IMG/VR virus record: IMGVR_UViG_3300042391_000634
Span: 1 to 64,000 of that record
Reading direction: 5' to 3' (one strand)
DNA length: 64,000 nt
This document shows positions 4,515 to 42,937 of the stretch, piece after piece. Positions within the stretch are counted from its first letter, which is position 1; every line of letters starts with the position of its first letter. Position numbers and translations under genes: made by a program. The notes under the pieces are model-generated. The model made no database searches, was not told where the DNA came from, and saw nothing but the letters and a program-made list of their open reading frames with translations.

Positions 4515-5357
4515 ATGAGCGGATTAACAACAATTAAATTAAGTAGTGAAGATTTAAAGAAGGAACAAGAACGCCAAAGGAAACGAGGTAAATTGATACT
4601 TAAACAACTAAAAAAAGGTAAGGTTAAGGTTGTTGTTGGTCTATATGATGAAGATGGAACGGTTCCCGATATTATATTTCAATATCAAATACATGATGCG
4701 GAAGTTAAATCAATTGTTGATTATGCCAATGGAGATGTAAATTGTTTAATTATTTGTTTTTATGATGACATTGATATTTTTAACGAAGATGGTAGTGAAA
4801 TAACAGAAAAATTACCTCTTTGGTTAGTTTCAGAAATTGAGAACAAACTTGAAAAAAAGTTTGAACAATTCAATATTGAACTTAGATTTAACCAACAATC
4901 AGGCGGAGGGAAGAAACATATAGTTAATGAAGAAGTGAATGACGACGACCAAAGACTAATTAACAAAACTAGAGTTATTTATAAATTACTCAAAAAAGGT
5001 GGTAAAATGGGGTTCGACTCTGCACCATATTACCACGAAGTACATTGGACATTACCCAATAAATTTTACGTTAAAATTAAACATCATGATAAAAAGGATG
5101 CTGAACGTTATCAATTAAAAGTTGATAGTTATCCTATTTTATTGTTGAACACTGAAACTATAAATTACACCAAAACCAATGATAAACCATTGAGAAATGG
5201 TGAAAAACATTTAATTGCAGGTGAGATTACAACTCAATTTAAAAAATATGGAATAACTGTTTATTGGGGAGGAGAAGTTCCAAAATATTCTATTTTTAGT
5301 CCAAGATCAATATCTCCCGATGAAACGTATACTGAAGTAGACATCACTCCAAAATAA
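4515..5357 (+). CDS. Two-copy KALKKG-domain protein, putative head-internal protein
   Basis: TATTTATA at 4503-4510; repeats KLILKQLKKG and KTRVIYKLLKKG joined by an IVNEE linker. Confidence 0.65.
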   Translation: MSGLTTIKLSSEDLKKEQERQRKRGKLILKQLKKGKVKVVVGLYDEDGTVPDIIFQYQIHDAEVKSIVDYANGDVNCLIICFYDDIDIFNEDGSEITEKLPLWLVSEIENKLEKKFEQFNIELRFNQQSGGGKKHIVNEEVNDDDQRLINKTRVIYKLLKKGGKMGFDSAPYYHEVHWTLPNKFYVKIKHHDKKDAERYQLKVDSYPILLLNTETINYTKTNDKPLRNGEKHLIAGEITTQFKKYGITVYWGGEVPKYSIFSPRSISPDETYTEVDITPK

Positions 5358-5358
5358 A

Positions 5359-5390
5359 TTTGGATATTCCAAATGGGGGTTGTATATTTG
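5359..5390 (+). promoter_or_regulatory. Bacteroidota-type housekeeping promoter (-33 TTTG, -7 TAnnTTTG)
   Basis: TTTG 5359-5362, 20-nt spacer, TATATTTG 5383-5390; the near-palindrome TTTGGATATTCCAAA overlaps the -33 element. Confidence 0.7.
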
Positions 5391-5585
5391 TTCCATGAAA
5401 GTAAAAATAACAATTAAATACCACATAGAGGTTGGTAATGAGGTCATTGAGTGTGATTCACTTGAACAGGCTGAACGTAAGATGAAACATATGTCAGATG
5501 TTGATAAGTTTCTTATTAAGACAGAATTAAAGGGTGATGAAGTATTAAATCAATTTTTAATTGGTTAATAGGGTATTTATACCTA

Positions 5586-5909
5586 ATGAATAGAAAGGAG
5601 TATAGGAGACTATTACAGGACCCCAAATGGAAGATAAAGGCTTCCTTCATAAGAAAGAGAGATAACCACACCTGCGTCAGATGTGGGAAGAAATCAAATA
5701 GATTACAGGTTCACCATACCAAATACGAAGATGGTCTAATGCCTTGGGAGTATGATAATGATACTTTGGAGTCATTATGTTCTGGTTGTCACAAAAAAGA
5801 ACATAATATTAAACCTAAGAGAAAGTTTACACCAAGGAAGAAGAAAGAACCTAAATTACAAACAAGGGTTATTAAGATTAAACCGTTTGTTGATTCTCTT
5901 GTTCCCTAA
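5586..5909 (+). CDS. HNH endonuclease
   Basis: RDNHTCVRCGK...LQVHHTKY...LESLCSGCHKKEH; preceded by TATTTATA at 5574. Confidence 0.85.
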   Translation: MNRKEYRRLLQDPKWKIKASFIRKRDNHTCVRCGKKSNRLQVHHTKYEDGLMPWEYDNDTLESLCSGCHKKEHNIKPKRKFTPRKKKEPKLQTRVIKIKPFVDSLVP

Positions 5910-6138
5910 CCCTCAATTCGGTTTTAAAAATTTCAATCCATTCTTGTTTGGATTTACCTTCATGAATTTCAGGTATTTCTATTAGTCCTATTCCTCTTAA
6001 ACAACCTAATGTGTTGATAATGTGACTAGTGGTCATCCAAAAAATAGGTGTGTGCCTGCCGGTTGCTGTTTTCCATACCGTATTGTGTCTATCGTAATTG
6101 ACATCTATTTCCGTTCCTTTAAAAAATTTAAAATTCAT
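5878..6138 (-). CDS. FKF-leader small protein (MNFKFFKG), paralog of 12089-12301
   Basis: Shared pattern W.T..G...P....T..I.....L...G......G....EW..I...EL..R. Confidence 0.7.
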   Translation of the reverse strand: MNFKFFKGTEIDVNYDRHNTVWKTATGRHTPIFWMTTSHIINTLGCLRGIGLIEIPEIHEGKSKQEWIEIFKTELRVREQENQQTV

Positions 6139-6146
6139 ACATTGAA

Positions 6147-7499
6147 TTAATTAACGACAATTTCATTTATAGTTATTGTTCCATCTAAATTACCATTTAA
6201 CGCAAGGAAGGTTAGTTTATTATTAACCTTAAATACTTTTACATAAGCCGGTGTAATTTTAGGAATATCTAAACCTTTATTATAATCCCCCATAACACCA
6301 TTATTATTCTTCCAAAATAATTTATTAATGTTAAGTGAATTTCCAGTTTTTAAAAGTTTACCGGCCCATCCATGTAATATAATATCAGGATAACCATCCT
6401 TATCAAAATCGATAATATCAAATTCTCTGAATTGTAATTGGTCAAATGTATAATCTAATCTATTATTAGAAGGTGTAAAGTTTCCTTTACCGTCACTATA
6501 CCAAATTTCAATACCATTGTAATTTGTTCCCTCTGTTGCAATTGCCAAATCAATATTACCATCTTTATTAAAATCGGCGGCTTTAATTGATGTTGAACCT
6601 CTATCGTCTGTTTTAAATATACCAAGAGGACCTGGATCCTTATCTAATTTATATTTCCCAAGAGTTGAGTTATATGAAAAAATACTAACACTATATCTAT
6701 CGTTTGGTTTTTGAAATGTAGGATTAAAACCATAATCTCCTCTAACAATTTCAGGACGAGAATCTCCATATAAATCTTGAATTAAAACTGCACCGCCGGC
6801 TTTTCCACCATAGAAATCTGAAGGGTCAAATATGTTATTGTTTTCGGTAAATGAACCATTACTATTTTGTGTATATGAATGAAGACCAAGATAATTATTA
6901 CCTTTTGTTCCCATGTGTAACCCTATAACATCAATTAAACCATCATTATTAATATCACCTGAAGATACCGAATGATAAAAACTATTAACGGTTGATATGT
7001 TTGAAAATGAAACTTTACTCCCTTCTGTTTTCATTAAAATTAAATTACCAAATGGCCATGGTTGACCATTTAATTCAGGACCAGAATCTGAAAATACCCA
7101 ACTTTGTTTTGTGGTATCAATACAAGTGTAGTTTCTACCACAACCCATAGAAGCCTCAGGATAACTATTTTCATAAGACCAATTATTATTTGTTTTTGTT
7201 AAATGTAAAGTTGGTATTAATGGATATGTATAAAATAATGTTGCAGGTATAATCAAATGTTCAATGTTATCTTTTTGATATAAAATAACACCAGGTATTG
7301 CCAAATTAACACCTTTAGCCACTATGTCGTTTGTAAAGTTTGGAACATTAAAACCAGATATTACTGTGGTTGTTAATGTATAAGGTGAAGTAGGTGGGAT
7401 CACAACTACAGGAGGTTCAATAACTACAGGGGGGACTACAGATTCCTTCTTACAAGATATTATTAATAAAAATAATATAAAATATAGAGTTTTTTTCAT
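6147..7499 (-). CDS. Lipoprotein with FG-GAP/VCBS-like repeats
   Basis: Lipobox LLIISC followed by KKES; repeats GDINNDGLIDVI, DLYGDSRPEIV, ADFNKDGNIDLAI, IDFDKDGYPDII. Confidence 0.8.
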   Translation of the reverse strand: MKKTLYFILFLLIISCKKESVVPPVVIEPPVVVIPPTSPYTLTTTVISGFNVPNFTNDIVAKGVNLAIPGVILYQKDNIEHLIIPATLFYTYPLIPTLHLTKTNNNWSYENSYPEASMGCGRNYTCIDTTKQSWVFSDSGPELNGQPWPFGNLILMKTEGSKVSFSNISTVNSFYHSVSSGDINNDGLIDVIGLHMGTKGNNYLGLHSYTQNSNGSFTENNNIFDPSDFYGGKAGGAVLIQDLYGDSRPEIVRGDYGFNPTFQKPNDRYSVSIFSYNSTLGKYKLDKDPGPLGIFKTDDRGSTSIKAADFNKDGNIDLAIATEGTNYNGIEIWYSDGKGNFTPSNNRLDYTFDQLQFREFDIIDFDKDGYPDIILHGWAGKLLKTGNSLNINKLFWKNNNGVMGDYNKGLDIPKITPAYVKVFKVNNKLTFLALNGNLDGTITINEIVVN

Positions 7500-15549: not shown

Positions 15550-16395
15550 ATGAAATTAATGGATATATTATTAGAGGATTGGGAAGATGATTACCGAAAT
15601 GTATCTCATAAGCTTAAACTTATGTATAAATTACTTAGAGTAGGGTCGGTTAAAATTAGTAAATTAATACCTGATTTTGAGACACCATTTTGGACAGGAT
15701 TTGATTGGATTGAAGATGGTGATGCATTGATAACATATGAACTACCAAGCGAATATCATTTAATACCTGGTAGTATAACTAGCATATATAGAATAGTAAT
15801 AAGAGGTATAACTATTAATTGTGAAAAATATCCAGCGTTAGCTGATGACATAGATATTAGGGAAGATTTATTAAGATATATTTTACGTAGAATTGAAAAT
15901 TATCTAATACCTACACTCCAAGAGGGAGACGAAATTGAGTTTAGTATAAGAAAAAAACATGAAGAGAATATTATGTTTAAGAATGTCGTAAATGAAAGTG
16001 TTGTTGATGATAAAGAAAATGATTATGATACCGTTGTTAAAAAGGCACCAACAATTTTCAAAGCACTCAAGAAAGGTAAGATAACAATGGAGGTTGATGC
16101 AATAAGATTATTTTATCGAGGTGCAACGGACCCACAAAAATACACATTTGATTATGATTTAGGAGATGTATACATTGTTGAAACAGATCCATTTGAAAAT
16201 AACTACAATGTTAAAGTTTTAATACCGGCAATTAAAATTAACTGTGACGAAAACCCAAATTTAAATAATATTCAAACAATTAAAATGGACATTCTTAATA
16301 TTGTTAAGAAAAAATTTAACAACTTTGGATTGAACATTATTCTTAGAGCAACAAAATTTCGTTTAAAACATAATGGAAAGTGGATTATACCTTAA
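15550..16395 (+). CDS. CTS-like leader (MKLMDILLED) plus two KALKKG domains
   Basis: TATTTATA at 15538; KLKLMYKLLRVG and KKAPTIFKALKKG joined by a VVNES linker. Confidence 0.7.
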   Translation: MKLMDILLEDWEDDYRNVSHKLKLMYKLLRVGSVKISKLIPDFETPFWTGFDWIEDGDALITYELPSEYHLIPGSITSIYRIVIRGITINCEKYPALADDIDIREDLLRYILRRIENYLIPTLQEGDEIEFSIRKKHEENIMFKNVVNESVVDDKENDYDTVVKKAPTIFKALKKGKITMEVDAIRLFYRGATDPQKYTFDYDLGDVYIVETDPFENNYNVKVLIPAIKINCDENPNLNNIQTIKMDILNIVKKKFNNFGLNIILRATKFRLKHNGKWIIP

Positions 16396-16639: not shown

Positions 16640-16651
16640 TCCACAAATATA

Positions 16652-24773: not shown

Positions 24774-24780
24774 ACCCTGA

Positions 24781-25565: not shown

Positions 25566-25589
25566 ATTATGATTAATGTGTAATACGTA

Positions 25590-26513: not shown

Positions 26514-26687
26514 GTATATAAATATTGCCAAACAATATTGACAGTGGATTCCTCCTCAAGGTTTATTTTTTTGCCAAACAATATTCGAGTCATCGTCTTC
26601 TGAGTTACTTTACTATTGACTGTCTACTGTAAACAATAAACCCCCCACAATAGTGGAGGGCTTACTATTGTCGTCCTATTGGGACAA

Positions 26688-26867: not shown

Positions 26868-27141
26868 CTTACTGAATTTAAATTTTAACATTATTGATTA
26901 TATTAAAATATAAAAAAATAAATCCGTAAAAAAAAATAAACGGCAACTATTTTTTCTTTTTCCCAGTAATTGTTTTGCCAAACAACATCCCGAATCCACA
27001 GTGGAACCTTAACTTCTTCTTATATAATCATACCACTCCTCACCCCATCTCTCCTCCATATAGATGAAGTGACCTTTTCTTTCCTCAGTATTAAACATTA
27101 AATACCCTTTAAAGTAATCCTTATACCACCGTAGTTTTCTT

Positions 27142-28659: not shown

Positions 28660-28709
28660 AGTTTTAAGTTTAGGATGTAAAGTTAATAAAGATTTAGAAT
28701 ATCACAAAT

Positions 28710-29210
28710 TTATTTGGAATATATTTTCTTATAGTTATCCACATTTTCTTCTATCTCATATCTCATTACTGTGGATATCTTGTCATACACTCGGTCCATG
28801 AATAACTCATTGCCAGACAATATCGTCACGTCTGCTGTTCCTTCGGGGAAGTATAAATCTATTGGGTCTATAAGAACCCTTACTTCATTAATATCATTAT
28901 CCGACCTGAAGAATGGACAACGACCATACACATAAGTGTTCCTAACAGTGTAGAGTTTAACACACTCTTTCATGTTAGTTAAAGCTCTAATCTGCATAAT
29001 GATTACTTCTAAGTTAGCCAACTGTTGAATGTCCATCTTATGTTTCGAAACCTTGGTTCTATATTCTGTTACAAAGTCTGCCAAACAATATTCGCCTGGC
29101 CCGTCTGTGTTATCACTTCTTGTTATGAACTGGTCATAGGAACTCCTTTCTTTAGAGGTCCCTACAATATTTACAAATACTCCTTCGGTGGTTTTATTTA
29201 CCCTACCCAT
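28710..29210 (-). CDS. Hypothetical protein containing two repeat half-sites and a DnaA box within its coding sequence
   Basis: TGCCAGACAA near 28811, TGCCAAACAA near 29079, TTATCCACA at 28735-28743. Confidence 0.6.
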   Translation of the reverse strand: MGRVNKTTEGVFVNIVGTSKERSSYDQFITRSDNTDGPGEYCLADFVTEYRTKVSKHKMDIQQLANLEVIIMQIRALTNMKECVKLYTVRNTYVYGRCPFFRSDNDINEVRVLIDPIDLYFPEGTADVTILSGNELFMDRVYDKISTVMRYEIEENVDNYKKIYSK

Positions 29211-29423
29211 GTTTTCTTATTTAAAATGTTAAAAAATGCTTCAGTTATTTTGCCAAACCAATTCGACCTGGAGACTCTGGCTGGTCGACCAGAAAAAACC
29301 CTGGTGTTAAAATCGTTCCCTCCATAGTATGGAGTTGGTTTTCTATATGCACTTGCCACACCATATTGGCGGCACCACTCGTCTTGAGGTGGTTGTTTTT
29401 CAGGGTAAGTAGTCTTACTCACT

Positions 29424-30035
29424 TTAGGATTCGACATTGCTTTCTTTTGTTTCGTTATATAATCTTGTTAATTCTTTCTTGTCTTCGTATGATACGAACA
29501 TATATTGGTTAAGGAAGTCTTCTAATGACATCTCTTCGCCCGAGATACTATCTAAACTATAGTCCACTTCAGACCAAAACTCATCTTTAGATAAAATATA
29601 CATTCCCTCAAGGAAACCAAACTCTTGGTCAAAGACATCCAACTCACCATCTTGCCAAGTAAATGTTGTCTCACCTGTAAATCCTACCCCACCTTCAGAG
29701 TAGTAGATGTGTCCATTCACCTGATACATTTTGCACAGATTCTCCATAAAAGGAATGGGAGGACTCCAAGCTGTTTCACAACTAAAAGATATTTCATCTT
29801 TGTTTAATGTAAATGCGTGTCTATCATATGAGATATCCCATTTAGTTCCAAACCAATTTACATTAGTATCATACCATTTCTCTTTGTAATCACCTTCAGA
29901 CATATAGGATGGAATACCTATTAGAGATTTAAACACATCATCATTCTCCTTAAGATTCTTAAGAACAGCGGTGAGGGCTTTAATAGTTCCCTCATTACCG
30001 CTGATTGTAATATTGTTATTGCACCAATTTGGCAT
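29424..30035 (-). CDS. DUF1281/Api92-like ferredoxin-fold protein
   Basis: MPNWCNNNITISG...WYDTNVNWFGTKWD...F.CETAWSPP...Y.EGGVGF.G. Confidence 0.7.
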   Translation of the reverse strand: MPNWCNNNITISGNEGTIKALTAVLKNLKENDDVFKSLIGIPSYMSEGDYKEKWYDTNVNWFGTKWDISYDRHAFTLNKDEISFSCETAWSPPIPFMENLCKMYQVNGHIYYSEGGVGFTGETTFTWQDGELDVFDQEFGFLEGMYILSKDEFWSEVDYSLDSISGEEMSLEDFLNQYMFVSYEDKKELTRLYNETKESNVES

Positions 30036-30291
30036 ATTATAAGAATTTAGTTTTATCGTAGAAGTTATTGTCGAGAGCTTTCTTAATCCCACTAATTAAA
30101 TGACATCTTGGTTCGGTGTCATACACTTCAGGATATTTAACCTTAATTTTCTCTCTTGCGGTATCAAACATAGTTTCGATTACTTCGGGAGTAACTCCTT
30201 TACCTTTTTCAATAAACTTCACAATTTTATTTAATTGTGTTTGACAAGCTGTATCACCAGCTTTACTATACATTTCAAAACTCATAGTATT

Positions 30292-30888
30292 TTAGTTTTC
30301 TTGTTCTTGTTTAAAATCATTTAGGAACTCACTCTCTAATGGTAAGTTATTCAAATCATATTTCTTTATCAACTTGATTGGATAATACTCACTTTCTTTA
30401 TCGGTTAGATTAAAGAACCTGTCCTCTATGGTTAATGGATTTTTATTAAAACCCTCGTAAACCTCTAATACATTCTTATCCAAATCTACAAGATATGCCC
30501 ACTCACAGAATAAACTATCACCTGCGAAGTCGGTGCTATCAGTAATCCATATCTCATCTTCTTCACCATTCATAATCATTTCAAGAATTTTAGCTCCATT
30601 GTCTCTTGTTAGATAAGGATACTTTTCCTGATACAATTTTGACTGGTCTCCATCCATCCAACCATTCTCACATCCAATAGACTTTAGCCACTTGCTAATT
30701 TCTTTTTCTTTACTACCATTCATAAACTTGACCTTACTTAATTTCTTCTTGAAGTCGTCCAAGTTGTTTGTTGATAAAAAGTCTAATACGACAACACCAT
30801 TACCTGATGGGTATCCATCCCATTGTCCGTATTGAGCTACCTTTGTTTCTCCATTGGAGATTACCATTGTTAAGTTTCTTGTTCCCAT
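30292..30888 (-). CDS. Conserved phage hypothetical protein (GTR...QWDGYPSG.G family)
   Basis: MGTRNLTMV...YGQWDGYPSGNG...EWAYLVDLDKNVLEVY. Confidence 0.6.
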   Translation of the reverse strand: MGTRNLTMVISNGETKVAQYGQWDGYPSGNGVVVLDFLSTNNLDDFKKKLSKVKFMNGSKEKEISKWLKSIGCENGWMDGDQSKLYQEKYPYLTRDNGAKILEMIMNGEEDEIWITDSTDFAGDSLFCEWAYLVDLDKNVLEVYEGFNKNPLTIEDRFFNLTDKESEYYPIKLIKKYDLNNLPLESEFLNDFKQEQEN

Positions 30889-31187
30889 TTTTATAAGTTT
30901 AGGATACAAAGATAATCATTATATCATTACACACAAACTTTTTTTGTTAAAATTTTGCTAAAGGATTTTAAATTTCTCACAGACATGCATCTGGTTGATA
31001 TTGTTTGGCAACGTTTGCGCTGGTAAATGCTGCAAATGCGCTCAGGGGGTATTTGTTTGGCAAAATCTTGGTATTGATAATCAATGAGTTATGTTTTGCC
31101 AAACAATATCTGTCTGGTGTGCCTGGTGATTTTTCTGGTAAAACTGGTGAATTGGCTGGTGCGAAGCAACATTGGCACATGCGAAGC

Positions 31188-31216
31188 AAAAAAAATCCCC
31201 CGTATTTCTACGAGGG
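31188..31216 (-). terminator. Repeated intrinsic terminator (CCCTCGTA-GAAA-TACGGGG followed by a U tract)
   Basis: Near-identical copies at about 31191, 33884 and 37250; variants at about 26638, 35039, 36172, 38219, 38808 and 39586. Confidence 0.75.
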
Positions 31217-31640
31217 ACTGAACTAAACTTACGAACCCACCTATCTAAAACTTACTTACTTTGTAATACGTCTTTTAATAATCTGAAAGAACCTTTGATT
31301 ATAGTTGTCTCTTTAATTGCATCATCTATTGATTTAAAACTCTTGTGTAATACGAAAGTCTTACCATCATTAGAATACCAAACATCGTATGTGTTTTTAC
31401 TTTGGGATAAAATAATCTTCGTTGTCATAATAATACGGATTGATTAAGATGTAAAGGTAATACATTTTATATTACAAACAAAAAAATTTAATTATAAACA
31501 TTATTTTTCCACATTTATTTTTGCCAGACAACATCCCTCAGGGGCCTTACATCTTGTCATACAGCAAATAAAAATGGGTATCATTTCTGACACCCATTCT
31601 ATAACAAACACTACTATATTGAACACTTCTATATAATATA

Positions 31641-33577
31641 CTAAATATTTTCCACTTTATCAACTTTGTTGGAATAAACCTCCAATACATCACCCAACTG
31701 ATTCATATTGTATATTTCAGCCGTCGACTCTCCACCATTTTCACTTGGGTCTAATGTTTCTTTGACACCATCTATTTCTTCCCAACTGATTTCATCGAGG
31801 TCTCCCGATTCATACATTTCTTTGGCAATCTTCACGGCTTGGTTTAAGTCCTCAGCTTTAACTTCAAAGTCGGTTCTCATCCACGTGGTAATCTTTTGGT
31901 CTATAAAGAATTCAAATGTTTTCATTGTTACTTATTTAATTCGTTAATTAATGTGATATCAGCTTCGGACATTTCATCTACCATTACTTTACTTAACTCG
32001 TCGAGATGTTTGCCAGAGAATTTGTCATACCCACCCATTTGGTATTTGGGATAAACAATTTTTGTTTCGGTGTCGATTACAGATGCAACTGATTTTAATT
32101 CTACTATCATGTTAATTAATTTAATTTTCTTATTGACATATAATTTTCTAATTCATCCAAAGAAATACGACCATCGTTAGAACTATAATAACCTTGTAGT
32201 TCGTATCGTTTTTTCCATTTATCAAATGCCTCAAATGCTTTTTTCTTTGAGGGGTAATATGGTTTATCGAACTCAATCGTAAACCCGTCGGGGGATAATA
32301 CTTGATACTTTATCATAGTCCTGCGTTTTTAATTATACAATCTAATTTATATTCAAACTCTTGGGTCATACCCTCAATGTCATACACCCTTTTAGTTTCA
32401 TCGTCGTCGGGATGATAAAATGAGATGTCCACTTTAATTACATTTTCATTGGTTTTTTTAACCATTGTTTGTGAATATTCGGTTTCGTGTTTAGTGTCCA
32501 TATGTTGAGAACCACTAAATCTATTTTGTGAATGAACAACTACAACTTGGTGAGGACCTACCGGTTCCCAACCATCGTTAATTTTATTACCAACTACTAC
32601 TGAAAGTCCTTCGGGACTACTTGATGCTACGATTTTATATTCCATTTGATTTAATTCATCATTAAGTTAAAAAATTTGATACCTAACTCTTGTAATTCTT
32701 TACACTTTCTTTTTTTTACTACTTCATCACGAACGTACATTGACTTATCGGATGTAATACCTAAGTCCATCATAGAAAAGAAGTGTTCCCACTTACCACC
32801 AACGAATAACTCACCTGTAAATCTTTCAAGTGCATTGTAACATTCGTAGGTCATTTTTAATTTAACCCCATTAACTTTCGGTTCTTGTATTACTAACACA
32901 TCGTGGGATGTATCCCTTGTGTGTGATTTACTTTCGTAGATTACTTTATTTTTCATTTGTGATAGTTTTAAATTGATTTAGATTACAAAGATAATTTAAT
33001 ATTGTGTTAGGGAAATGTTAAAGTGTTAACGATATAAGGTAACATAATCACCAAAATACTTTTCAAAAACATTTAATAAGTTTTCGTAATCACCTTTCAT
33101 CATTTCAGATTGAATTACTTTACCATCCAAACCTAATTGTTTTGCAAACTTGGATGCCATACCAATTAATACAAATGCGTTTCCATCGGGACCAGTTAGG
33201 TCGATTTCAATTCCTGATTTTTTTTCGTTGATTGACTTTATCATAACTTAATTTTTATTTTTGTTTATAATTTTTTTCTCAAACCATTGTTTCATTGTTA
33301 ATGGTGTTAGGGCATCGGATAAATCAGTTAGAATATATTCTCCTGATTTAATTTTAGTTTCAGTTTCTTTTTTCGATTCCCCCAAAAATTGATTCCTATA
33401 CTTTCCCGTTGTCTTGGAATAATTCCAATAGGTCTCATCCAAATAAACTCTCCCGTCTTCAATCTTTACAATAATACTTTCGTAGGACTGAAAGATTCTT
33501 AAACTTTCGTTTCTAATTACAATCTGATTGGGAACTTTGTTCCCGTTCGAACTTGTTAAATTTCTAATTGTTGTCAT
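31641..33577 (-). CDS. Seven small early hypothetical ORFs (31641-31925, 31928-32110, 32116-32316, 32313-32645, 32651-32956, 33026-33244, 33248-33577)
   Basis: ORF track; TATCTTTG -7 elements upstream (CAAAGATA at about 32986 and about 33596 on the + strand). Confidence 0.6.
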
Positions 33578-33931
33578 ATTATTTGATTTAGGATACAAAG
33601 ATAATTCATTTTAAATTATACTACAAACTATTTTATGTTAAAACTTTGTTAAGATGTAATACGAATGTTTCACCTGTCGTCCGAGCTATGATATTGTTTG
33701 GCATTGTAATACGTTTGCCAAACAACTTTGGATGTCATCGGAACATGTGGGACTTCGGGAACATCAGGAACATCTTTTTGGGAACATTGGGAACATTGGG
33801 AACATGCGCACTGTGAATATCTTCTGGCAAATGCCAAACAATATTCATAGCTCACCAGGTGCTAGTATTTCCTATCGGACAATAAAAAACCCCCGTATTT
33901 CTACGAGGGTTCGGGGGACAAACAATAACCA

Positions 33932-34777
33932 TTAAACCATATGAACCAAATCTGAAAATATCTCTTGTTCTACTTGACCGATACCACCGAACATTTTTGC
34001 CTCGGTATTATCGTTCTTACTATAAGAGTGTGTTGTGTATTTTGTTACACCACTAAACAAACCCCAAAGGTTATCACCTTTACCTTGAATCTCACCATTT
34101 AAGTCAATATAGAATCTACTTAAATTGTTTTTAGTTCTTGTAGATAATTCATCACTATCTAAACTAAATTCAGGTTTGATGCCAAACAACTTTCGTGTCA
34201 CCTTCTCCTTCAACAAATCGTCAAAACGTGTTTCACTCAATTCAGTAATGAATCTGAATGTTTCTTTTTCTTCTTCCAATACAACGTCTAATCTTCTACA
34301 AATGTCTTCCACTTTTAAAGACATAGACTTTGTGTGTCGAACTTTGTTTTGAAGTCCACTCATCACTCTAAAGAATGTGTTCATACAACTGATAGTCGTA
34401 TTAGAATGACCGAATGCTAATGATGTAGAACCATCAAAAGAATTCACACCTGTTAAATAACCCTCAATTCGGTCGTTACCCAATTTAAGGTCGTTACCTT
34501 TTAATTGAACGTAAATACGTCCACCACCTTTGAACTCACCACCACGATGAATTTCTAAACCTGTTCTACCTGATACTTGATGTAATAAGTCCATCAACTC
34601 ATGGTTCTGATAAGGAACATAACCATCAGAGTGTAAACCCACAATATCTTGTGTGTCGTTTCTAACGATTGCTTTTTTGTTTGGAATACTAATACCACTA
34701 ATGGTTTGTAATTCCTCCTGACGTACCGTCCAATTAAGGTTGGTCTTGTCTAATAATGTTTTTACTTGTTCGTTCAT
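33932..34777 (-). CDS. DUF932-family phage/plasmid protein
   Basis: W.V..E.L, AIVR.DT..IVG.HS..Y...QN, NSFDGSTS..F..S.....CMN, LWGLFSGVTKY.TH. Confidence 0.8.
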   Translation of the reverse strand: MNEQVKTLLDKTNLNWTVRQEELQTISGISIPNKKAIVRNDTQDIVGLHSDGYVPYQNHELMDLLHQVSGRTGLEIHRGGEFKGGGRIYVQLKGNDLKLGNDRIEGYLTGVNSFDGSTSLAFGHSNTTISCMNTFFRVMSGLQNKVRHTKSMSLKVEDICRRLDVVLEEEKETFRFITELSETRFDDLLKEKVTRKLFGIKPEFSLDSDELSTRTKNNLSRFYIDLNGEIQGKGDNLWGLFSGVTKYTTHSYSKNDNTEAKMFGGIGQVEQEIFSDLVHMV

Positions 34778-35089
34778 ATAAATTAATTTAGAGTGTAAAG
34801 GTAGGTCTTTTATATTACCCACCAAATAATATTTGTTAACACTTTGTTAAAGAATATGTAATACGAATGGGATCCACTGTGCCATCTGAATATTGATTGG
34901 CAATTGCCAAACAAATTGTCTACGGTGCCCTGAACCAAGTCGTGTTGTCCTGTTTTTTATATAATAAAGTGGACAAGTGTAATACGTTTGCCAAACAATA
35001 TATTTGCATGCATGATGCAGGAAAGTTTGGACATAAAAAAAGGGATTGTCATACGACAACCCCCTCTTACTTTATCACTACTAACCCTC

Positions 35090-35836
35090 TTAAATGTTTC
35101 TCAAATTAATTCTACTTTCTTTGTTTCTACTAAAATTATAGATTTCTTCTATCATTTTAATATATTCATCTACACTACCACAAAAGTGAATATTAGTTGG
35201 TCTTAACTTTACCTTACGAACAAACTCACTAAAAGAAAAGTCTTTACATCTTGTTAAAGTTTTGATAATCGCTCTTACGAATGTTGAACGATTATAACCC
35301 TCAAACAAAGGTTTCAATTCCATAATGTTCATCGCCCATTCAATCGCCTTATCCATATTCTTTGTAACAAACTTACCACTCTCAAAGTTCTCTCTATCAC
35401 AACCACTTAACGAATTCGTACATAACATCATACATTCAGTTGGTCTTAATTCGGGATATTGTTTCATAAAGTTATTTAACTTAATGTAGTGTGGATTTCC
35501 CTCTACAACAAACCCGTGAATATGGTCGGTTATCGCCCAATTCTTTTGACGACTATTTAAACTTCTAATTGTTTCAAAACCTGCGGTCGTTTCTAAAATA
35601 TAAGAAATAGGAACCCCTACTTCCATAGCGGCGGTTACTCTATGTTGTCCATCAATGATTTCACCTTTCTTGTTGATAACAACATAAGAACCTCTTTCCC
35701 AACCACGAACTTTCATATTGTTTACAATATTCTTTACGTGGGATTTGTTAATAACTCTATTGTCACTTCTAAATGTGAAAATAGAATAATCTTTTGTTTG
35801 GTAAACTTCGTTTACTTTTTTTCCGTTACGTATCAT
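35090..35836 (-). CDS. ParB/Srx N-terminal-like protein
   Basis: NR.IN..HVK.I...M, VVINKKGEIIDGQHRVTAA. Confidence 0.7.
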   Translation of the reverse strand: MIRNGKKVNEVYQTKDYSIFTFRSDNRVINKSHVKNIVNNMKVRGWERGSYVVINKKGEIIDGQHRVTAAMEVGVPISYILETTAGFETIRSLNSRQKNWAITDHIHGFVVEGNPHYIKLNNFMKQYPELRPTECMMLCTNSLSGCDRENFESGKFVTKNMDKAIEWAMNIMELKPLFEGYNRSTFVRAIIKTLTRCKDFSFSEFVRKVKLRPTNIHFCGSVDEYIKMIEEIYNFSRNKESRINLRNI

Positions 35837-36225
35837 TTTTATTTTTGTTCAGATTTTATCCTGTCCCCGAGATTGATTAATAATGATAGAACAAAGATAT
35901 GTTGTATATTATTATATTCCAAGTATTATTTAGAATATTTTAGTTAAGAATATGTTAAAGTGTAATACGAAGATTTCCCCGCTGTTGCTGCAGTACGATA
36001 TTGATTGGCAAATTTTTGACCAGTGTTGATGCAGCTCAGGACCAGTGACGATATTGATTGGCAAATGCCAAACAAGTTTCAGCGCATGCGTTGTGGGACT
36101 CGACTAAGTGTAATACGTTTGCCAAACAATATTCCCTGAACTTCACAGTGCCGCTGAATTTGATAAACAAAAAAAAGGATAGTCTTTCGACTACCCTTCT
36201 TCACCTTTTCCAACCTTATGTATTT

Positions 36226-36771
36226 CTACACAAGTTCTTTTTCCAAGTGTTGTAATACGGACTTACCTTCACTTTCACATTCTTCTTCACCAAAATATCC
36301 ACCACAACTTTCAACTAATGTTTTATGTTCGTGTCCTTTATCACAAGTTTCTATTTCATATACTTCATAACAATAAACTTCACCCGTTAGATACTTATCG
36401 TAAGTTTCAATTTCACCTTTAAGGTATTCTTCAACTTTAGTTTCATCAATACCTTCTTTCTTTATCTTATGTTTAGATACAAAGATAAAACCAACCTGTC
36501 CACTATCCCAACGACAATCAAACGGACTTGTTGATATAGTTATACCCGAGTGGTCATATAGATACAAAGGTAAGATAACAACTTCACCTTCATTAGTAAT
36601 AATACCTTCTTTTAATTCGTCCCAACTATCATAATCTTCAGTTCGATAATCAGTCTTGTCACCAAGTTCATACCTTTTGTGAAAACATACCATCGTTCCC
36701 AAGTTATCCCAATCGGTTCGAGGGTTCATTGGGTTTGTGTCTTGTTCAATTTTTAATTCAAATTTTTTCAT
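36226..36771 (-). CDS. Conserved phage hypothetical protein
   Basis: NPRTDWDNLGTM.CFH.RY.LGD...LPLYLYDHSG.TI...WDSGQVGF...SCGGYFG. Confidence 0.65.
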   Translation of the reverse strand: MKKFELKIEQDTNPMNPRTDWDNLGTMVCFHKRYELGDKTDYRTEDYDSWDELKEGIITNEGEVVILPLYLYDHSGITISTSPFDCRWDSGQVGFIFVSKHKIKKEGIDETKVEEYLKGEIETYDKYLTGEVYCYEVYEIETCDKGHEHKTLVESCGGYFGEEECESEGKSVLQHLEKELV

Positions 36772-37305
36772 ATTGTTTGTTTTAGAGTATAAAGGTAAGT
36801 CTTTTATATAACATACCAAAATATTATCGTTAAGACTTTGTTAAAGAATATATCACCTGTTGGGACCGGCATCGATTGAATATTGGTTGGCAATTGCCAA
36901 ACAAATAGCAGCGCGCGCTGCTTTTCACGGGGTATTGTAATACGTTTGCCAAACAATAACCGCACAGGCCTGTGGCGCATGGTCTACAGCATTTCTTGTT
37001 CATTAATTCTTCTTGTTCACGTTCCGTGAACATAGGTAATACGTGAACACTTTTGCCAGACAATATTTCCTGAATTCGAACCGTCGGGGTGTATTCCCTC
37101 CACTATGTATTACGAAAGTCAATGGTAGTAAGGGTTTAATAATTCTTTAGAGAACTTTTAGTAAGTTTTTAGCAAATATTGTAGCAAATAGTGTGAAACT
37201 TGCCAAACAACTTGTCTACAGCGCGCACCCGGTAGATTCTCTACCAAATAAAAACCCCCCGTATTTCTACGAGGGGAACACAATATAAATCACAAACAGA
37301 ACAAA

Positions 37306-37898
37306 CTAATCTACCATATCATATTTCCAATCCATTTTTTCCATAACCTTCTCAATCTTGTCATACACTTTGGAATCTTCTACTCGGTTGAACATTTCAT
37401 CAAACACAAGTATAGAACTCGGGTCACAAAAATAGGTGTTTGTTTCTTTAACAACAACAACGTTGTATTCATCAACATTATACCAATTACCAACTCTTTG
37501 TAATTTCATATCAATTAATTTTTAGGGTTTAAGTAGATTTCCATTCTCGCGGGAACGACTTTTGCCAGATTACATTCATCACAACATTCGTCATCTTCAT
37601 TTTTAGTTTCTAACGGGTGTGGGTCATTACCATAACCTTCTACTTCTTTGTCACAAAGACAACAGATAAACTTTTCCATTTTTATTTAATTTAATACTTG
37701 AAAAATATCCTTACCAATAATCAATCCTAATGTTCTTCCGTTATCCCATTTAACATTGACAACATCAAAACCAACATTATACACAACTCCTTCACGACCA
37801 ACTAAAATTGGTTGTGGGTCATCTTCCATTGGTTCAATAAGTTTAACTCTTTTACCCATAAGTAATTGTGGGTTTACAAGGAAATCATTTACTATCAT
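37306..37898 (-). CDS. Small ORFs 37306-37509, 37515-37679 (Cys-rich CCLC...CCDEC; absent from the track) and 37686-37898 (DUF4314-like)
   Basis: Manual translation MEKFICCLCDKEVEGYGNDPHP...CCDECN; G.RV.LI..M.DD..PI..G.EG.V...VKWDNGRTLGLI.G.D. Confidence 0.55.
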
Positions 37899-38265
37899 AG
37901 TGTTTGTTTTAGAGTGTAAAGATAAGTGTAATACTTTTATATTACAAACTCATTTAGTTAAAACTATGTTAATGTGTAATACGACCAAACCCGTGGAGGA
38001 AGACCGGATAATTTATTGTTTGGCAAAATGTAAAGTAAAACCCCCACAATATGTAATACGAATTCACCCGTGGGACGAGTTTACTCAGGAGATATTGATT
38101 GGCAACCTTGTTACCTTTTTATATAAAACCATAACATAAGTCAAGTTTTTGAATCAATAAACTTGACATCTGCCAAACAATATCCGGATGGAGACGACAG
38201 GTGAGAGGTGTGGAAATAAAAAACCCCCTACTTTCGTAGAGGGTCTTGGTCTTTGGGAGGAATAA

Positions 38266-38532
38266 TTAATTCAATGGAATTTCTTTACCAATACCATACT
38301 CACAAATTTTGTGTAGTAAGGGTAAAACTCTACTACCGATAATCTCATTCAAATACTCATCTCTGTCAAATTCATCATCGGTGTCATCTTCAATGTTTTT
38401 ACCCGTTTGGTCAAAATACATATCACCAATCATTTCAAGAAATTCGTTATCACTCATTTCTTCAATCAATTGTGTTAATCGGTCAGTAATAACTCCATTA
38501 ACAATTTCTAATACTTTTTCTTTTTTGTTCAT
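38266..38532 (-). CDS. Hypothetical protein
   Basis: Start reassigned to MNKKEK, downstream of the conserved TACCTTTACACTCTAAA module. Confidence 0.6.
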   Translation of the reverse strand: MNKKEKVLEIVNGVITDRLTQLIEEMSDNEFLEMIGDMYFDQTGKNIEDDTDDEFDRDEYLNEIIGSRVLPLLHKICEYGIGKEIPLN

Positions 38533-39630
38533 TTTATTTGTTTTAGAGTGTAAAGGTAATACAATTATAGGACATACCAAAATTCATCAGTTAAAACTTT
38601 GTTAATGTAATACGTTTTCACCCGGGTGTAACTGATTGTTGTGTGGCAATTGCCAAACAAGTTCACCGATGGGATCCACGGTGTGTGTCGTAATACGAAT
38701 CTTTGCCAAACAATAGTTCGGATACTTCACGGGGAAGTGTTCCTTCATTAGAATAATTGCCACACAACATCTTAGCGGAACCCTGACTCAAGTCCGTTGT
38801 GGACATAAAAAACCCCCACCATAGAAATGATGAGGGTAAATCTAAAATGAAAACACAGACAATTACATATAAGACCATTTACGACCAAGAATATTGTTTA
38901 CCATTACACGAAACGATTTTTTATACAAACGATACATTCTATCCTCTCCCGTTGAAGTTCCAATTTTATCACTGAACTTAAAAGTCCATATAAAACGAAC
39001 AATAAAGAAAGGAGTTAAAATAAACACGATAATGATAGTTTGCCAAAGAAATTTCAATAGATACTTCATAATTTTAAAATTTTAAATGAGTTTTTAAATT
39101 ACCCTACAAGGACAATGTAGGACATAAAATAGGTTAATGAGAAACTGAACATTAGTAGTCCGTAGATTTTGATTTTCTTTTCCATTTGATTAAGTAGTTT
39201 AGGACACAAAGATAATACTTTTATCTTTATATTTTCTTATCTATTAAGAATTGGTCGTTAAAATTATGTTAATGTAATACCAAGTGGTGAGGAGTTACGA
39301 AGACACAGGAGAATATTGTGTGGCAAATCGGATATGGTTACGAATATTAACGGATATATACGGATATTGCCAATCAATATCACATTCTACAAGGAATCCA
39401 ACATTCGTTGTATGACAATTGCCAAACCATATTATTTTCTACAACCGAGATCCCTTCCATTTTTATTGTTAAACCTATGTTAAAGGTTTGCCAAACAACA
39501 ATTCGGATTTGGATTCTGTGTTCGGTGTTATGTATGACAATTGCCAAACAATAGTTCGGATTACTTCGTAAGGTTCGGGTCAAAAAAAAACCACTCCTTT
39601 CGGAGTGGTCGGTTTGTAGGGGAACAAACC

Positions 39631-40185
39631 TTAAAGAATTGTGTATTCTTGTTTAAGAATTTTAATTCTTTTAATGTGGTCTAAACTCATTACCTTATAG
39701 TTTAAGGTATTGTCTAAACCATTTTGATACTTTGAGTAGTCCGTTTTCGTATCAATAAGGTATTGAGTGAACATTACCTTTTCAATACTATTACCCTCAA
39801 ACACATACTTTGTATCAAGGTAAGAACTATCGTGGTCTTGGTAACGAAAGTAAAATTTCGTTGGGTCGGACTTTAATACTACCAAACTTTTTGATACTAA
39901 CTGATAAGGACTTTCTTTCTTATCCTCGTTTACGATAGGGGTAATTCCTTCGGTCTTATACTTTCTACCTAATTGACCTTCGTAATCAAAACCCGTTTGG
40001 ATATTTGATAACTTTTGTTCAATCAAAACTAAATCGTAATAAGGGTTAGGGTTACTTTTACCACTTACTTTGAAGTCAAGATATTTGTTCATCTTAACTT
40101 TTTTTAATGTTGTCAATCCCACATTAGGGACAAAGATATCTATACCTGATAGTATATCTTTTAGTTCTGTTTTTGTAATGTTCAT
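39631..40185 (-). CDS. Hypothetical protein, first gene of the inverted island
   Basis: Start MNITKTE; TATCTTTG -7 element upstream. Confidence 0.6.
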   Translation of the reverse strand: MNITKTELKDILSGIDIFVPNVGLTTLKKVKMNKYLDFKVSGKSNPNPYYDLVLIEQKLSNIQTGFDYEGQLGRKYKTEGITPIVNEDKKESPYQLVSKSLVVLKSDPTKFYFRYQDHDSSYLDTKYVFEGNSIEKVMFTQYLIDTKTDYSKYQNGLDNTLNYKVMSLDHIKRIKILKQEYTIL

Positions 40186-40610: not shown

Positions 40611-40622
40611 ATATTTATACAT

Positions 40623-41168
40623 ATGAACTTACAAGAAGATATACAAAGGATTAAGGAGGTGATGGGGATTAATGAATTAAGAAACCCGTGGTTCAATTAT
40701 GTGCAATCCAAAACAAAAGAGATTACCGGACAAGATTGGCCTAACTATGTATTAAAAGATTGGTTATATAGTTTCACCAAAAAATATGAGAATAGTGATT
40801 CTCCTGAAGTTTATAAAAACATTGTTAAGTCCTTTGTGGAAAGTTTTGTAGAAGGACACGGTAAGGGTAATTGGGAACATAAGGTATTAGATGTTAGTAT
40901 GAATATTTTTATCCCATCAACACAAGAGAATTTAAAAAAGAAGATAGAAGGTGATATTAACAAAGATATACCCAAAGATGAAGAAAGACATAATGTACAA
41001 CAATCTAAATTAGATAAGGTGGGAGTTTCTCCTGAACCTATTATTGTTCTACAGAAAAAAGACGGTATTGAATTATTGGAAGGTTGGCACAGAACCACAT
41101 CTGCCCTTAATAAATTTGGTACCTATAAACAAAATGCTTGGGTATATGTACCTGATATATTAAAATAA
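40623..41168 (+). CDS. Leader plus ParB/Srx-like domain protein
   Basis: TATTTATA at 40612; MNLQEDIQRIKEVMGINE; PEPIIVLQKKDGIELLEGWHRTTSAL. Confidence 0.65.
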   Translation: MNLQEDIQRIKEVMGINELRNPWFNYVQSKTKEITGQDWPNYVLKDWLYSFTKKYENSDSPEVYKNIVKSFVESFVEGHGKGNWEHKVLDVSMNIFIPSTQENLKKKIEGDINKDIPKDEERHNVQQSKLDKVGVSPEPIIVLQKKDGIELLEGWHRTTSALNKFGTYKQNAWVYVPDILK

Positions 41169-41169
41169 T

Positions 41170-41718
41170 ATGAAATTAGTGTCGGTCTTAAATGAAGTTT
41201 TGAATATAGGGAGTGGAGAGAGAATACATGTCTCTAACAACCCTATGCAGGAACTACGTGACCTAACCGCACAGAACGGTGTTCCTTCTGATAATAGACC
41301 TATAGGTAAACCTGATGGGTTTTGGTATGCATTCGGTGATAGTTGGTTATATTGGACATCTATGAATATGTCAACTAAAAATTACGAACATGCATATAAG
41401 GTTATTGTTGATAGGTCCAAAATAGTATCCATACGTAATCAGGATATGTTAGATGATTTTAACCGTGAATTTACATATGAAACGGATAGTAAATATATGC
41501 CGTATTTAGTAGATTGGGTTAAGGTATCTCAAAAATATTCAGGGTTTGAAATTCCAGCTTATGATGACCTTGAAATTAGTGGAGATAGATATATCATACG
41601 AAATAGATGGTTATTAAATTGGGACATTCCCTCAGGTGTTATATGGAACCCCAATGCTGTATTGAAACTAAAACCATTGGGTAATCCTAATACACTCAAA
41701 CAACCAAGAAAGAATTAA
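41170..41718 (+). CDS. Leader (MKLVSVLNE) plus putative ART-like domain
   Basis: IH.S....KPDGFWYAFG..W..W...DW.KVSQKYSGFEI...WDIPSGVIWN, a pattern I associate with viral ADP-ribosyltransferase-like folds. Confidence 0.45.
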   Translation: MKLVSVLNEVLNIGSGERIHVSNNPMQELRDLTAQNGVPSDNRPIGKPDGFWYAFGDSWLYWTSMNMSTKNYEHAYKVIVDRSKIVSIRNQDMLDDFNREFTYETDSKYMPYLVDWVKVSQKYSGFEIPAYDDLEISGDRYIIRNRWLLNWDIPSGVIWNPNAVLKLKPLGNPNTLKQPRKN

Positions 41719-41744
41719 TAACATAATTAAGATATTTATATAAC

Positions 41745-42389
41745 ATGTATAAGAATTTCAATATTACAGAGTCAGAGAAAGAACAAATCTTAAATAGACT
41801 CAAAGAGAATGGTTACAGACAACCGACAAATAAAAAAGTTATATCTGAACAAGGTGAACCAGAAGGTGAATTGGAACAAAATCCAATAGGAGAATTAAGA
41901 AATGATTTTCATATTGCAAGTAAAGATGAATATGGAATATTATACCTTTTACGTAATAAAAGAGGTGGGGAATATGGTGTGTTCAATAAATCAAAGATGG
42001 ATTGGGAACATGGATATCAACCAAGTTTTACTGAATCGGATATAAAATTATACGAAACACAAACAGGAGAGTCTGTACTTATACAAAAATATATGGGAAT
42101 TGGTGATAAAGTATTCTATACCCTATATAAAATAGATGGAGACGATTCGATGACATCTACGGTGAAATTTTTAAATACAAGAGAACATGTTGACGTTGTA
42201 AAAAATCTAAAACCTATTGATACTGACGAACCTGTTAATAATGGTGGTTTTGATGAGAAATACACCGATAGTGTATATGAGGAAGATGAGACAATGGATA
42301 AGGAAGACTACATGGTAAAACATGGTCAAAATCCAATGAACGAAGGTAAAGAGATATTAAAGGACGTATTTAAGAAATTAATCAAATAA
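41745..42389 (+). CDS. Leader-bearing acidic hypothetical protein
   Basis: TATTTATA at 41733; MYKNFNITESEKEQIL; internal VISEQ and MNEG. Confidence 0.6.
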   Translation: MYKNFNITESEKEQILNRLKENGYRQPTNKKVISEQGEPEGELEQNPIGELRNDFHIASKDEYGILYLLRNKRGGEYGVFNKSKMDWEHGYQPSFTESDIKLYETQTGESVLIQKYMGIGDKVFYTLYKIDGDDSMTSTVKFLNTREHVDVVKNLKPIDTDEPVNNGGFDEKYTDSVYEEDETMDKEDYMVKHGQNPMNEGKEILKDVFKKLIK

Positions 42390-42396
42390 AGATACC

Positions 42397-42478
42397 CAGG
42401 GTTTGAAGACCCTGCTTAGGACCGGGACTAGTTACTAATCCCGTTGGGATATGAATTCGCTACTCATATCCCTTTTTT
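42397..42478 (+). ncRNA. Candidate structured RNA: three tandem hairpins, the last a terminator
   Basis: CAGGGT/ACCCTG, CGGGA/TCCCG, GGGATATGA/TCATATCCC followed by T6. Confidence 0.4.
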
Positions 42479-42493
42479 ATTGTATTTATACAT

Positions 42494-42937
42494 ATGAAAC
42501 TAATGGACCTGTTAACTGAGAATACTAATGAACCAAGAGTTGTATATTTTAATACTCCCGATGGTTATAGTGGTTCACCGGAAGACCATAAGATGATTAA
42601 GAAGATGAAAACCATCTATAAGGCCCTATCTAAGGGTCGTGGTGAGGTTCAGGTACATCATGGTGATAATTACCCTCCCCTTGATTTATCCTACGAATTA
42701 CCCCCTTTAAACACCGTTGCAATCCTTATTGACTATCCCACTAAGAAACAACTTAAGAATGGTGCCGAAATTGCTTATACGTTTGATGTTGTCGGTAAGG
42801 TGAAATACACCCTCCATAACTTTGAAACACAACGAGATACCGATATTGATAGATTTATGATGCATAAGGGACATGAAATATCGTTTGTCTATAAAAAGAG
42901 ATTTGAAGACTTTGATATTGGTATCACCAGTTCTTAA
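42494..42937 (+). CDS. CTS-like leader (MKLMDLLTEN) plus one KALKKG domain
   Basis: TATTTATA at 42483; KKMKTIYKALSKG...YKKRFEDFDI. Confidence 0.7.
   Translation: MKLMDLLTENTNEPRVVYFNTPDGYSGSPEDHKMIKKMKTIYKALSKGRGEVQVHHGDNYPPLDLSYELPPLNTVAILIDYPTKKQLKNGAEIAYTFDVVGKVKYTLHNFETQRDTDIDRFMMHKGHEISFVYKKRFEDFDIGITSS

Follow-up and report, generated by a model that had tools for sequence, protein, structure and literature searches.

Diverged domain units with a common leader and linker motif in a freshwater jumbo phage: candidate protease-cleavable polyproteins

Why would a phage join highly diverged copies of one small domain in a single reading frame, and set a short conserved peptide at the start of the chain and a related motif at its joints? 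The question is raised by eight genes, here A to H, in bases 1-64000 (hereafter the window) of IMGVR_UViG_3300042391_000634 (JGI 3300042391 Ga0453978_0000001), a 335,630-bp contig of an uncultured lake phage. The original prediction had described 13 units of a hypervariable family in these genes, and had proposed that they are packaged in the phage head and released there by a protease. We find this interpretation partly supported: the units form one family, their arrangement as cleavable polyproteins appears well supported by sequence statistics and by a structural model, and capsid targeting and the identity of the protease are suggested by analogy with phage T4.

One diverged family of units in eight genes

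All 13 units and all eight genes lie where they had been placed. The JGI gene calls give identical products for A-F and G, and make H three codons shorter (start 42503, 144 aa); a profile scan of the window for a 14th unit found none. The genes are listed here with their N-terminal leader, the junctions between units and an upstream promoter-like DNA motif.

Gene A, 4515-5357, + strand: 280 aa; units 4575-4889 and 4956-5270; linker HIVNE 4917-4931; without the MKLLD leader; GGATATTTATA at 4501-4510, 4 nt before the ATG
Gene B, 15550-16395, + strand: 281 aa; leader MKLMDILLE 15550-15576; unit B1 15604-15948; junction NVVNE 15982-15996; unit B2 16033-16347; TATTTATA at 15538-15545
Gene C, 18951-19784, + strand: 277 aa; leader MKLLDIIKE 18951-18977; unit C1 19011-19349; junction ELINE 19389-19403; unit C2 19422-19757; TATTTATA at 18937-18944
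Gene D, 19784-20830, + strand: 348 aa; leader MKLIDTLSE; units D1 19826-20074, D2 20165-20461 and D3 20537-20827; junctions RELNE 20129-20143 and QPINE 20483-20497; the start overlaps the gene C stop (TAATG), with no promoter motif of its own
Gene E, 21498-21947, + strand: 149 aa; leader MKLLDIVRE; one unit 21549-21914; TATTTATA at 21485-21492
Gene F, 21952-22311, + strand: 119 aa; leader MKLLDILNE; one unit 22003-22308; GATTTATA at 21939-21946
Gene G, 25590-26513, - strand: 307 aa; N terminus MKLSKLREQ; an unrelated N-terminal part of ~200 aa and, fused to it without a junction motif, one C-terminal unit 25593-25892; TATTTATA at 26517-26524 (- strand)
Gene H, 42494-42937, + strand: 147 aa; leader MKLMDLLTE; 24-aa spacer; one unit 42593-42931; GTATTTATA at 42482-42490

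Properly aligned, the units form a single family, as had been claimed, with a pairwise identity of merely 14-27% and three conserved blocks: an N-terminal helix KKxKxI(F/Y)KALKKG, a central YxLP(D) strand and a C-terminal I..KFxxFxI. The alignment agrees with a profile test in which each gene was left out in turn, run against all the window's open reading frames (ORFs) in six frames. The omitted gene was always the best match outside the training set, with E values from 4.5e-4 (G) to 4.6e-25 (D), and the best unrelated ORF never fell below E 0.06. That the family is not due to chance is fully confirmed. Its weakest member, unit B1 (domain E 0.23 when omitted), nevertheless clusters with four database units. 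The size of 110-140 aa first given for a unit holds for the period including the linker; the core of a unit is shorter, 83-122 aa.

The family extends well beyond the window and is large as well as divergent, in keeping with the description of it as diversified. A profile search of 1.84 billion representative proteins matched 135 clusters (at 50% identity) at E <= 1e-3, 65 of them at E <= 1e-10, with between one and six units per protein. Those family members that we looked up are all metagenomic 'hypothetical proteins' with arrays of small uncharacterised genes as neighbours. Five matching proteins (P0056, 6246 aa; P0078, 4252 aa; P0092; P0115; and P0125) align, in some cases repeatedly, to the central strand region alone (profile positions 16-87); we treated these as spurious, that is, as chance or repeat matches confined to that region. 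Two of the very long partial matchers come from 8-Mb genomes.

Searches for known relatives returned nothing. None of the eight proteins matched Pfam or PHROGs at E <= 0.001, including PF12699 and the T4 internal protein families; tblastn of gene D and of the six-unit protein P0002 against 50,697 GenBank phages gave no match, nor did a PDB profile search with the unit family, and a search of the ESM Atlas returned unnamed clusters only, all below 0.8. AlphaFold modelled a single unit (gene F) confidently, with a predicted local distance difference test score (pLDDT) of 87.6 and a topology of helix, six or seven strands, helix, strand. Foldseek found nothing at E <= 0.001 for the single unit in PDB and BFVD or for a two-unit model in PDB, the best TM score being about 0.43. 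The structural check that had been proposed thus yielded a confident model and no relative of it. The domain, of ~100 residues, is a new, phage-specific family without a known fold relative.

Unit types are also found in changing company. The 268 units fall into 33 types and 46 singletons, and the position and neighbours of a given type vary, as in the orders A-C-B, C-P, C-H, J-C-E-O and L-E-C. Among relatives, a D2-type unit occurs in fusion with one of F type, and a D3-type unit alone behind a leader. A diverged relative in two lake runs (X3 and X6) has contigs in which the linker of gene C (at 19378) continues, after 17 nt (TAAACCGAATGAACCTT), into gene D's first linker (at 20136), a natural recombinant at the junctions. 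These arrangements indicate that unit types recombine combinatorially as independent cassettes.

A hydrophobic-x-Glu motif at the joints and at the N terminus

All five linkers between units in the window carry the (I/L/V)NE motif that had been noticed there: HIVNE, NVVNE, ELINE, RELNE and QPINE. The same holds for the wider family, in which [ILVM]-N-E occurs in 75 of 85 linkers between complete units (88%), against a mean of 6 and a maximum of 15 in composition-preserving shuffles. Its density is 32 per 1000 residues in linkers and 1.2 within units, a 28-fold difference. Relaxed to [ILV]xE, the motif is found in 83 of the 85, and the few linkers without Asn that we inspected all retain hydrophobic-x-Glu (LSE, VKE, VGE, LHE, LQE). 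The typical context is E-P-[I/L]-N-E followed by S/N/D/E and acidic residues, and the next unit begins 4-22 residues further on, at no fixed distance. At the codon level the junctions are mixed: Asn is encoded by AAT (9) or AAC (6), Glu by GAA (11) or GAG (4), and the hydrophobic residue at P3 by seven different codons. Because synonymous codons vary in this way, the junction appears to be selected as peptide and not as DNA, and the variation rules out a DNA-level meaning of the junction (ATTAATGAA, an out-of-frame ATG and TAA-TGA).

The AlphaFold model of gene C, built with a multiple sequence alignment made from two-unit slices, shows two separately folded units (predicted template modelling score 0.55). 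Three stretches alone have a pLDDT under 50: residues 1-14 (the leader), 145-151 (exactly PTELINE) and 205-208 (a short loop). Across the family, Asn-Glu is about as conserved as the best core positions (four at >=90% in one alignment, two in another). A motif that is conserved within a flexible segment resembles a protease site or a docking site. The family thus combines what is expected of protease-processed polyproteins: units predicted to fold independently in the gene C model, and accessible linkers with the motif (75 of 85) whose codons vary.

The N terminus carries a matching signal. Most of the genes had been said to begin MKL(L/I/M)D(I/L/T)xxE, and six of the eight do (B, C, D, E, F and H). 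Among 92 diverged members the leader consensus is M-K-[F/L]-[L/I]-D-[I/L]-[I/L]-x-E, followed by D/S/E/N, with the length fixed at 9; position 7 is hydrophobic in 86 and position 9 is Glu in 76 of them, and at position 8 the residue varies (39 of the 92 have Asn). Leader and linkers therefore have a hydrophobic P3 and a Glu P1 in common while P2 varies, which is the (L/I)-x-E pattern of the T4 gp21 type. The additional MK-L-L-D part stands at the N terminus only and not in the linkers, as would be expected if a chain were targeted once and cut at every joint. The leaders of the window vary synonymously (AAA/AAG, TTA/CTA, GAT/GAC, GAA/GAG), so the leader, too, appears to be selected as a peptide. 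A T4-type capsid targeting sequence (CTS), that is, an N-terminal leader of ~10 aa on diverse proteins that ends in (L/I)-x-E, has its counterpart in six of the eight window genes and in the 92 database members.

We propose, with a probability of roughly 0.45, that these chains are precursor polyproteins which a prohead protease of the T4 gp21 type would cut after Glu, the leader serving for capsid targeting. The weaker claim that they are processed polyproteins, whether cut in the prohead or by another endopeptidase, we regard as likely.

A promoter-like motif shared with other genes, and the genomic setting

Seven of the eight family genes, and about ten others, have TATTTATA or GATTTATA 3-7 nt before the ATG. 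The full form of the motif, (G)(A/T)TATTTATA, stands before ~17 genes between 4358 and 62226 of the window (for example at 4503, 15538, 18937, 40612, 42967, 48677 and 55902), and ATATTTATA is enriched, with 16 sites against 7.2 expected. Among relatives that were fetched regardless of the motif, eight of ten family genes carry TATTTATA. Because the motif ends so close to the ATG, the mRNAs would be leaderless or nearly so. Although it points the same way as the gene, the sequence (G)(A/T)TATTTATA corresponds to the T4 late -10 box TATAAATA in reverse complement. Two other accounts of the upstream regions were set aside: sigma-70-type promoters are not enriched (136 found, 132.5 expected), and TATTTATA does not act as a substitute for a Shine-Dalgarno sequence, since other genes have an A-rich, G-poor upstream region instead.

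The further genes with the motif 3-7 nt before the ATG, in the region 40612-55909, belong to the same expression class and lie outside the unit family. They are listed with their hydrophobic-x-Glu sites, together with a second lysin gene and with two leader-bearing genes.

Start 40623: GINE-18
Start 41745: ITE-9
Start 42979: ISE-7 and ITE-16; second type of leader (42979-43030)
Start 45693: ITE-7 and ISE-16; second type of leader (45693-45745)
Start 48689: VTE-7 and LNE-20; looser leader of the second type, MKLQVTESQLKLIEQ (48689-48750)
50098-50643, - strand (start 50643): endolysin-like gene, an endolysin-like domain (phrog_21890) after a leader of 17 residues that ends in MINE (MINE-17); TATTTATA upstream
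Start 55914: LLE-8; the product is similar to gp205 of PA5oct, which mass spectrometry showed to be a virion protein
62241-63083, + strand: lysin gene with PG_binding_1 and Glyco_hydro_19 (GH19) domains; TATTTATA 14 nt upstream
44055-44096, + strand: promoter-like motif and MKLIDIIFE leader of the non-family gene 44070-45380, which encodes an HNH/DUF723 endonuclease-like protein (phrog_559, E 5e-67)
46920-46961, + strand: near-identical cassette on the unrelated gene 46935-48152

The motif is thus common to the family genes, the endolysin-like gene, the GH19 lysin gene and the homologue of a PA5oct virion protein. Hydrophobic-x-Glu occurs within the first 12 residues in eight of the ten non-family genes with the motif and in 19 of 91 other genes (Fisher p = 3.3e-4), some of the cassettes counted being duplicates. 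Upstream of genes 44070 and 46935 stand 19 nt that are nearly the same in both, and each gene has an MKL(I/L)DIIFE leader. The second type of leader, MK(I/V)(I/L)I(S/T)E.QL..II(S/T)E, has two hydrophobic-x-Glu sites and recurs at contig base 78819 (L062:17006) and in two database family members (P0093 and P0104); it heads larger proteins without an assigned function.

A similar N terminus occurs in other phages. One contig, L031, encodes an S77 protease, a gp23-type capsid protein and, beside this head module, a 127-aa gene that starts MKLLDIINE (L031:58-441, - strand). With its homologues in L260, L262, L268, L272 and L276, it represents a conserved protein of 126-128 aa that ends the head module and starts MKL(L/I/V)DI(L/I)xE; its neighbour, a small core-like protein next to the S77 protease, contains three hydrophobic-Asn-Glu sites (QQINE, GIINE and NPINE). 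We considered L031 as a link between the leader and an S77 protease and give it little weight: this N terminus is a conserved trait of the 127-aa family in ordinary T4-like aquatic phages, none of them with units, and as that family merely shares an N-terminal pattern, L031 says little about the phage of the window. From the sequences compared, the leader grammar may be wider than the unit family.

The window is AT-rich (GC 27-36%), and a search of it for tRNA genes found none. Megablast of two 8-kb stretches against the 50,697 GenBank phage records gave no match, and at least 24 DNA runs from lakes or fresh water contain DNA near-identical to the window; the phage is known solely from lake metagenomes. 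In the close relative L335, the sequences compared with the window are identical, which leaves dN/dS uninformative. Only five of 92 window genes have a Shine-Dalgarno sequence, positions -10 to -13 are A-rich and G-poor, and a block of ~10 genes further along the contig (L338; contig 92,707-106,500) encodes proteins with signal peptides of the Bacteroidota-style MKKLL...(A/G)Q type. Because of these upstream regions and signal peptides, we think that the host is probably a freshwater member of the Bacteroidota.

Several other gene groups stand around the family:

24000-40000, - strand: block of higher GC (0.33-0.36) with reversed skew, encoding DUF932, DUF4314, DUF8033, DUF1281_C and L5 gp82-like proteins (plasmids and integrative elements are the more usual place for DUF932 and DUF1281)
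52519-55590, - strand: sugar-nucleotide and glycosylation genes (epimerase/GDP-mannose dehydratase-like, PfkB kinase, cytidylyltransferase, cupin)
Contig 70,800-77,000: several glycosyltransferases and a UDP-galactopyranose mutase-like gene
6147-7499, - strand (opposite strand): FG-GAP repeat protein, 450 aa
23673-24773, + strand: endonuclease VII/HNH protein, 366 aa, with a Lar-like N-terminal region

Head cargo, the alternatives and known systems

If the chains are cargo of the head, their path can be sketched as follows. The genes would be transcribed late, individually from TATTTATA-type promoters; the leader, like the CTS of T4, would carry the whole chain into the assembling prohead; and a Glu-specific prohead protease of the T4 gp21 (S77) type would remove the leader and cut each linker after Glu. 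Units of 13-17 kDa would thereby be released, remain inside the head and reach the host together with the DNA. Each might bind a different host target, as is suggested by a variable face of the beta-sheet and by the free shuffling of unit types. Late timing, cleavage, protease, packaging and unit function are all steps that we infer. More tentatively, the family may be a combinatorial effector system delivered by the capsid, in which one leader brings up to six hypervariable domains of a new fold into the prohead, the head protease cuts them apart and shuffling of cassettes at the linkers diversifies the repertoire; it would then be, just as tentatively, a phage counterpart of polymorphic effector arrays. 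An anti-defence role of the units is pure conjecture. The alternative role that had been suggested, coating of the DNA, is disfavoured in its simple form because the predicted pieces span isoelectric points of 4.9-9.2 and are not uniformly basic.

A number of observations weigh against cleavage and packaging in the head. Exact-protein look-ups in contig bases 1-111,961 found no S77 or S80 prohead protease, portal or capsid gene, and in scans for a head module (with a PA5oct-like capsid alignment, a degenerate GVQPMTGP DNA pattern and the L031 capsid protein) the contig was absent among the matches listed. The units have no homology by sequence or fold to IPI, IPII, IPIII or Alt (Pfam, PHROGs, PDB profile and Foldseek against PDB and BFVD, at E <= 0.001). 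Genes A (which starts MSGLTTIKL) and G lack the leader, and the MKLxD leader is also found, in the window and in relatives, on HNH/DUF723 endonuclease-like and other unrelated proteins; homing-endonuclease-like proteins are, to our knowledge, not capsid cargo. D1-type units hold a conserved (P/T)(I/L)NE within the folded domain, just before the C-terminal helix (in gene D residues 72-75, window 19997-20008, within YCPINEHAM), and the same is true of P0002, P0005 and P0008; this internal PINE could be a protected site or an additional cut. Because the second-unit helix in the gene C model starts at the Glu of this motif, hydrophobic-Asn-Glu could also be a helix N-cap. Duplication of some promoter-leader cassettes means that the cases behind the N-terminal statistics are not wholly independent. 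The part of TATTTATA as a late promoter is suggested by the genes downstream of it, and cleavage and virion location are proposed from sequence.

One alternative keeps the processing and gives up the capsid. The polyproteins would be cut after Glu in the cytoplasm by some other endopeptidase of phage or host, the format serving late co-expression of small effectors and the leader acting as a propeptide or regulatory tag. Everything that points to a linear motif of the cleavage type fits this equally well, packaging would not be needed to account for the leader on endonuclease-like proteins, and head genes were not found near the family or in the 112 kb read. Among phage enzymes, however, cutting after Glu with a hydrophobic P3 is the signature of the gp21 type (PMC5694885, PMC7411985), the Pfam annotations of the window include no protease gene of any kind, and a short leader of fixed length that ends in the same site matches the CTS arrangement. 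We consider this alternative unlikely.

Another dispenses with cleavage altogether: the products would be modular proteins that stay intact, beads on a string such as multivalent binders, in which hydrophobic-Asn-Glu is a hydrophobic staple with an N-cap or a docking motif and the leader is an N-terminal helix. The start of the unit 2 helix at the INE Glu speaks for it, as do the helical residues 4-9 of the leader in the gene C model, the fact that Asn is a common N-cap residue, and gene G, in which a unit is fused to another domain without a junction motif. Against it, the motif stands a variable 4-22 residues upstream of the conserved helix and in the stretch of lowest model confidence. Where Asn is missing, its place is taken by K, G, H, Q or S, with Glu and a hydrophobic P3 retained, which favours a protease subsite over a cap, and Asn-Glu is about as conserved as the best core positions in a segment that is nevertheless predicted to be disordered. 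Unit order and number are arbitrary, so no fixed geometry between units is needed. An uncleaved chain is in our view doubtful.

Least probable is the idea that the leader is no peptide signal and that TATTTATA plus the first nine codons are an expression cassette (a promoter and the start region of a leaderless mRNA) which spreads by recombination and is kept for transcription or translation, like the mobile promoter cassettes of T4-type phages: the distance of just 3-7 nt to the ATG with its leaderless or nearly leaderless transcripts, the window genes without a Shine-Dalgarno sequence, the nearly identical 19 nt and leader of genes 44070 and 46935, and the occurrence of the cassette on unrelated genes agree with it, but synonymous sites in the leader vary while residues 5, 7 and 9 are kept across 92 diverged proteins, the leader ends like the internal linkers, which play no part in initiation, gene D has the leader without the promoter motif, and the linkers are left wholly unexplained.

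The proposal of head cargo cut at Glu has its closest precedent in T4. The internal proteins and Alt of T4 have an N-terminal CTS of ~10-20 aa that binds to the core of the prohead and that gp21 removes (PMC7411985), the sites of cutting in Alt are ITE-6 and LTE-619 (PMC5694885), and the internal proteins of T-even phages make up a very diverse group with the CTS alone in common (PMC3012670). Like those of IPI, IPII, IPIII and Alt, the leader described here has about 10 residues, starts with MK and ends in hydrophobic-x-Glu; it is common to unrelated or highly diverged small proteins, and its genes form a hyperplastic set. The linker and leader consensus fits gp21 as judged by the two Alt sites (PMC5694885, PMC7411985, PMC3012670), cutting here being predicted from sequence. 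Unlike T4 internal proteins, the units have no sequence or fold similarity to them, the family strongly prefers Asn at P2, the host is probably from the Bacteroidota and not an enterobacterium, and up to six cargo units stand behind one leader with internal sites, an arrangement of which we found no description for internal proteins in the sources consulted.

Giant phages also have large families of head paralogues, and their S80 proteases, which are related to gp21, cut after Glu; in the families of the phiKZ and SPN3US type, which are head proteins, some propeptides are removed in this way (PMC5694885). The window family resembles the phiKZ inner-body proteins (PF12699) and the SPN3US families A and B in being a set of many rapidly diverging paralogues in a jumbo phage. 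It differs in that its units match neither PF12699 nor PHROGs, in its motif (hydrophobic-N-E instead of S/A/G-x-E or A-x-E) and in its layout, as the phiKZ and SPN3US paralogues are separate genes whereas the units are in tandem in one reading frame.

In this last respect the family is like viral polyproteins, in which independently folding products share one frame and a short motif ending in Glu lies in flexible linkers. The picornavirus protease 3C, for example, cuts after Gln or Glu. Polyproteins of that kind belong to eukaryotic RNA viruses and have a fixed order of essential products, unlike the units, which are paralogues of one domain, free in order and number, in a double-stranded DNA phage. 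We know of no description of a tailed-phage polyprotein in this format, although the literature was not searched exhaustively. The mobile promoter cassettes of T4-type phages are promoter-early stem-loop elements that mediate modular shuffling; there too a conserved 5' regulatory motif stands on many small accessory genes and is tied to gene shuffling, but in the window conservation reaches into the peptide and recurs in frame at the linkers. The system matches its precedents in T4 and giant phages in grammar (leader, hydrophobic-x-Glu and diversified family) and not in sequence or fold. New here are the domain family and the several cargo units per reading frame, for the latter of which we found no description.

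If the proposed processing and packaging are right, tailed phages use a polyprotein strategy in which one targeting peptide loads several different small proteins into the capsid, and the maturation protease doubles as the processing enzyme. Such a strategy would account for the ability of a jumbo phage to hold a large repertoire of injected proteins and to reshuffle it fast. The family would then be a new source of domains for anti-defence or host-takeover screens in freshwater Bacteroidota phages, and the compact grammar of leader plus linker would serve to predict capsid cargo in uncultured phages. The leader might possibly also load foreign proteins into capsids, as the T4 CTS already does. 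Should cleavage fail, a conserved linear motif in the disordered linkers of a freely shuffled family would still demand an explanation.

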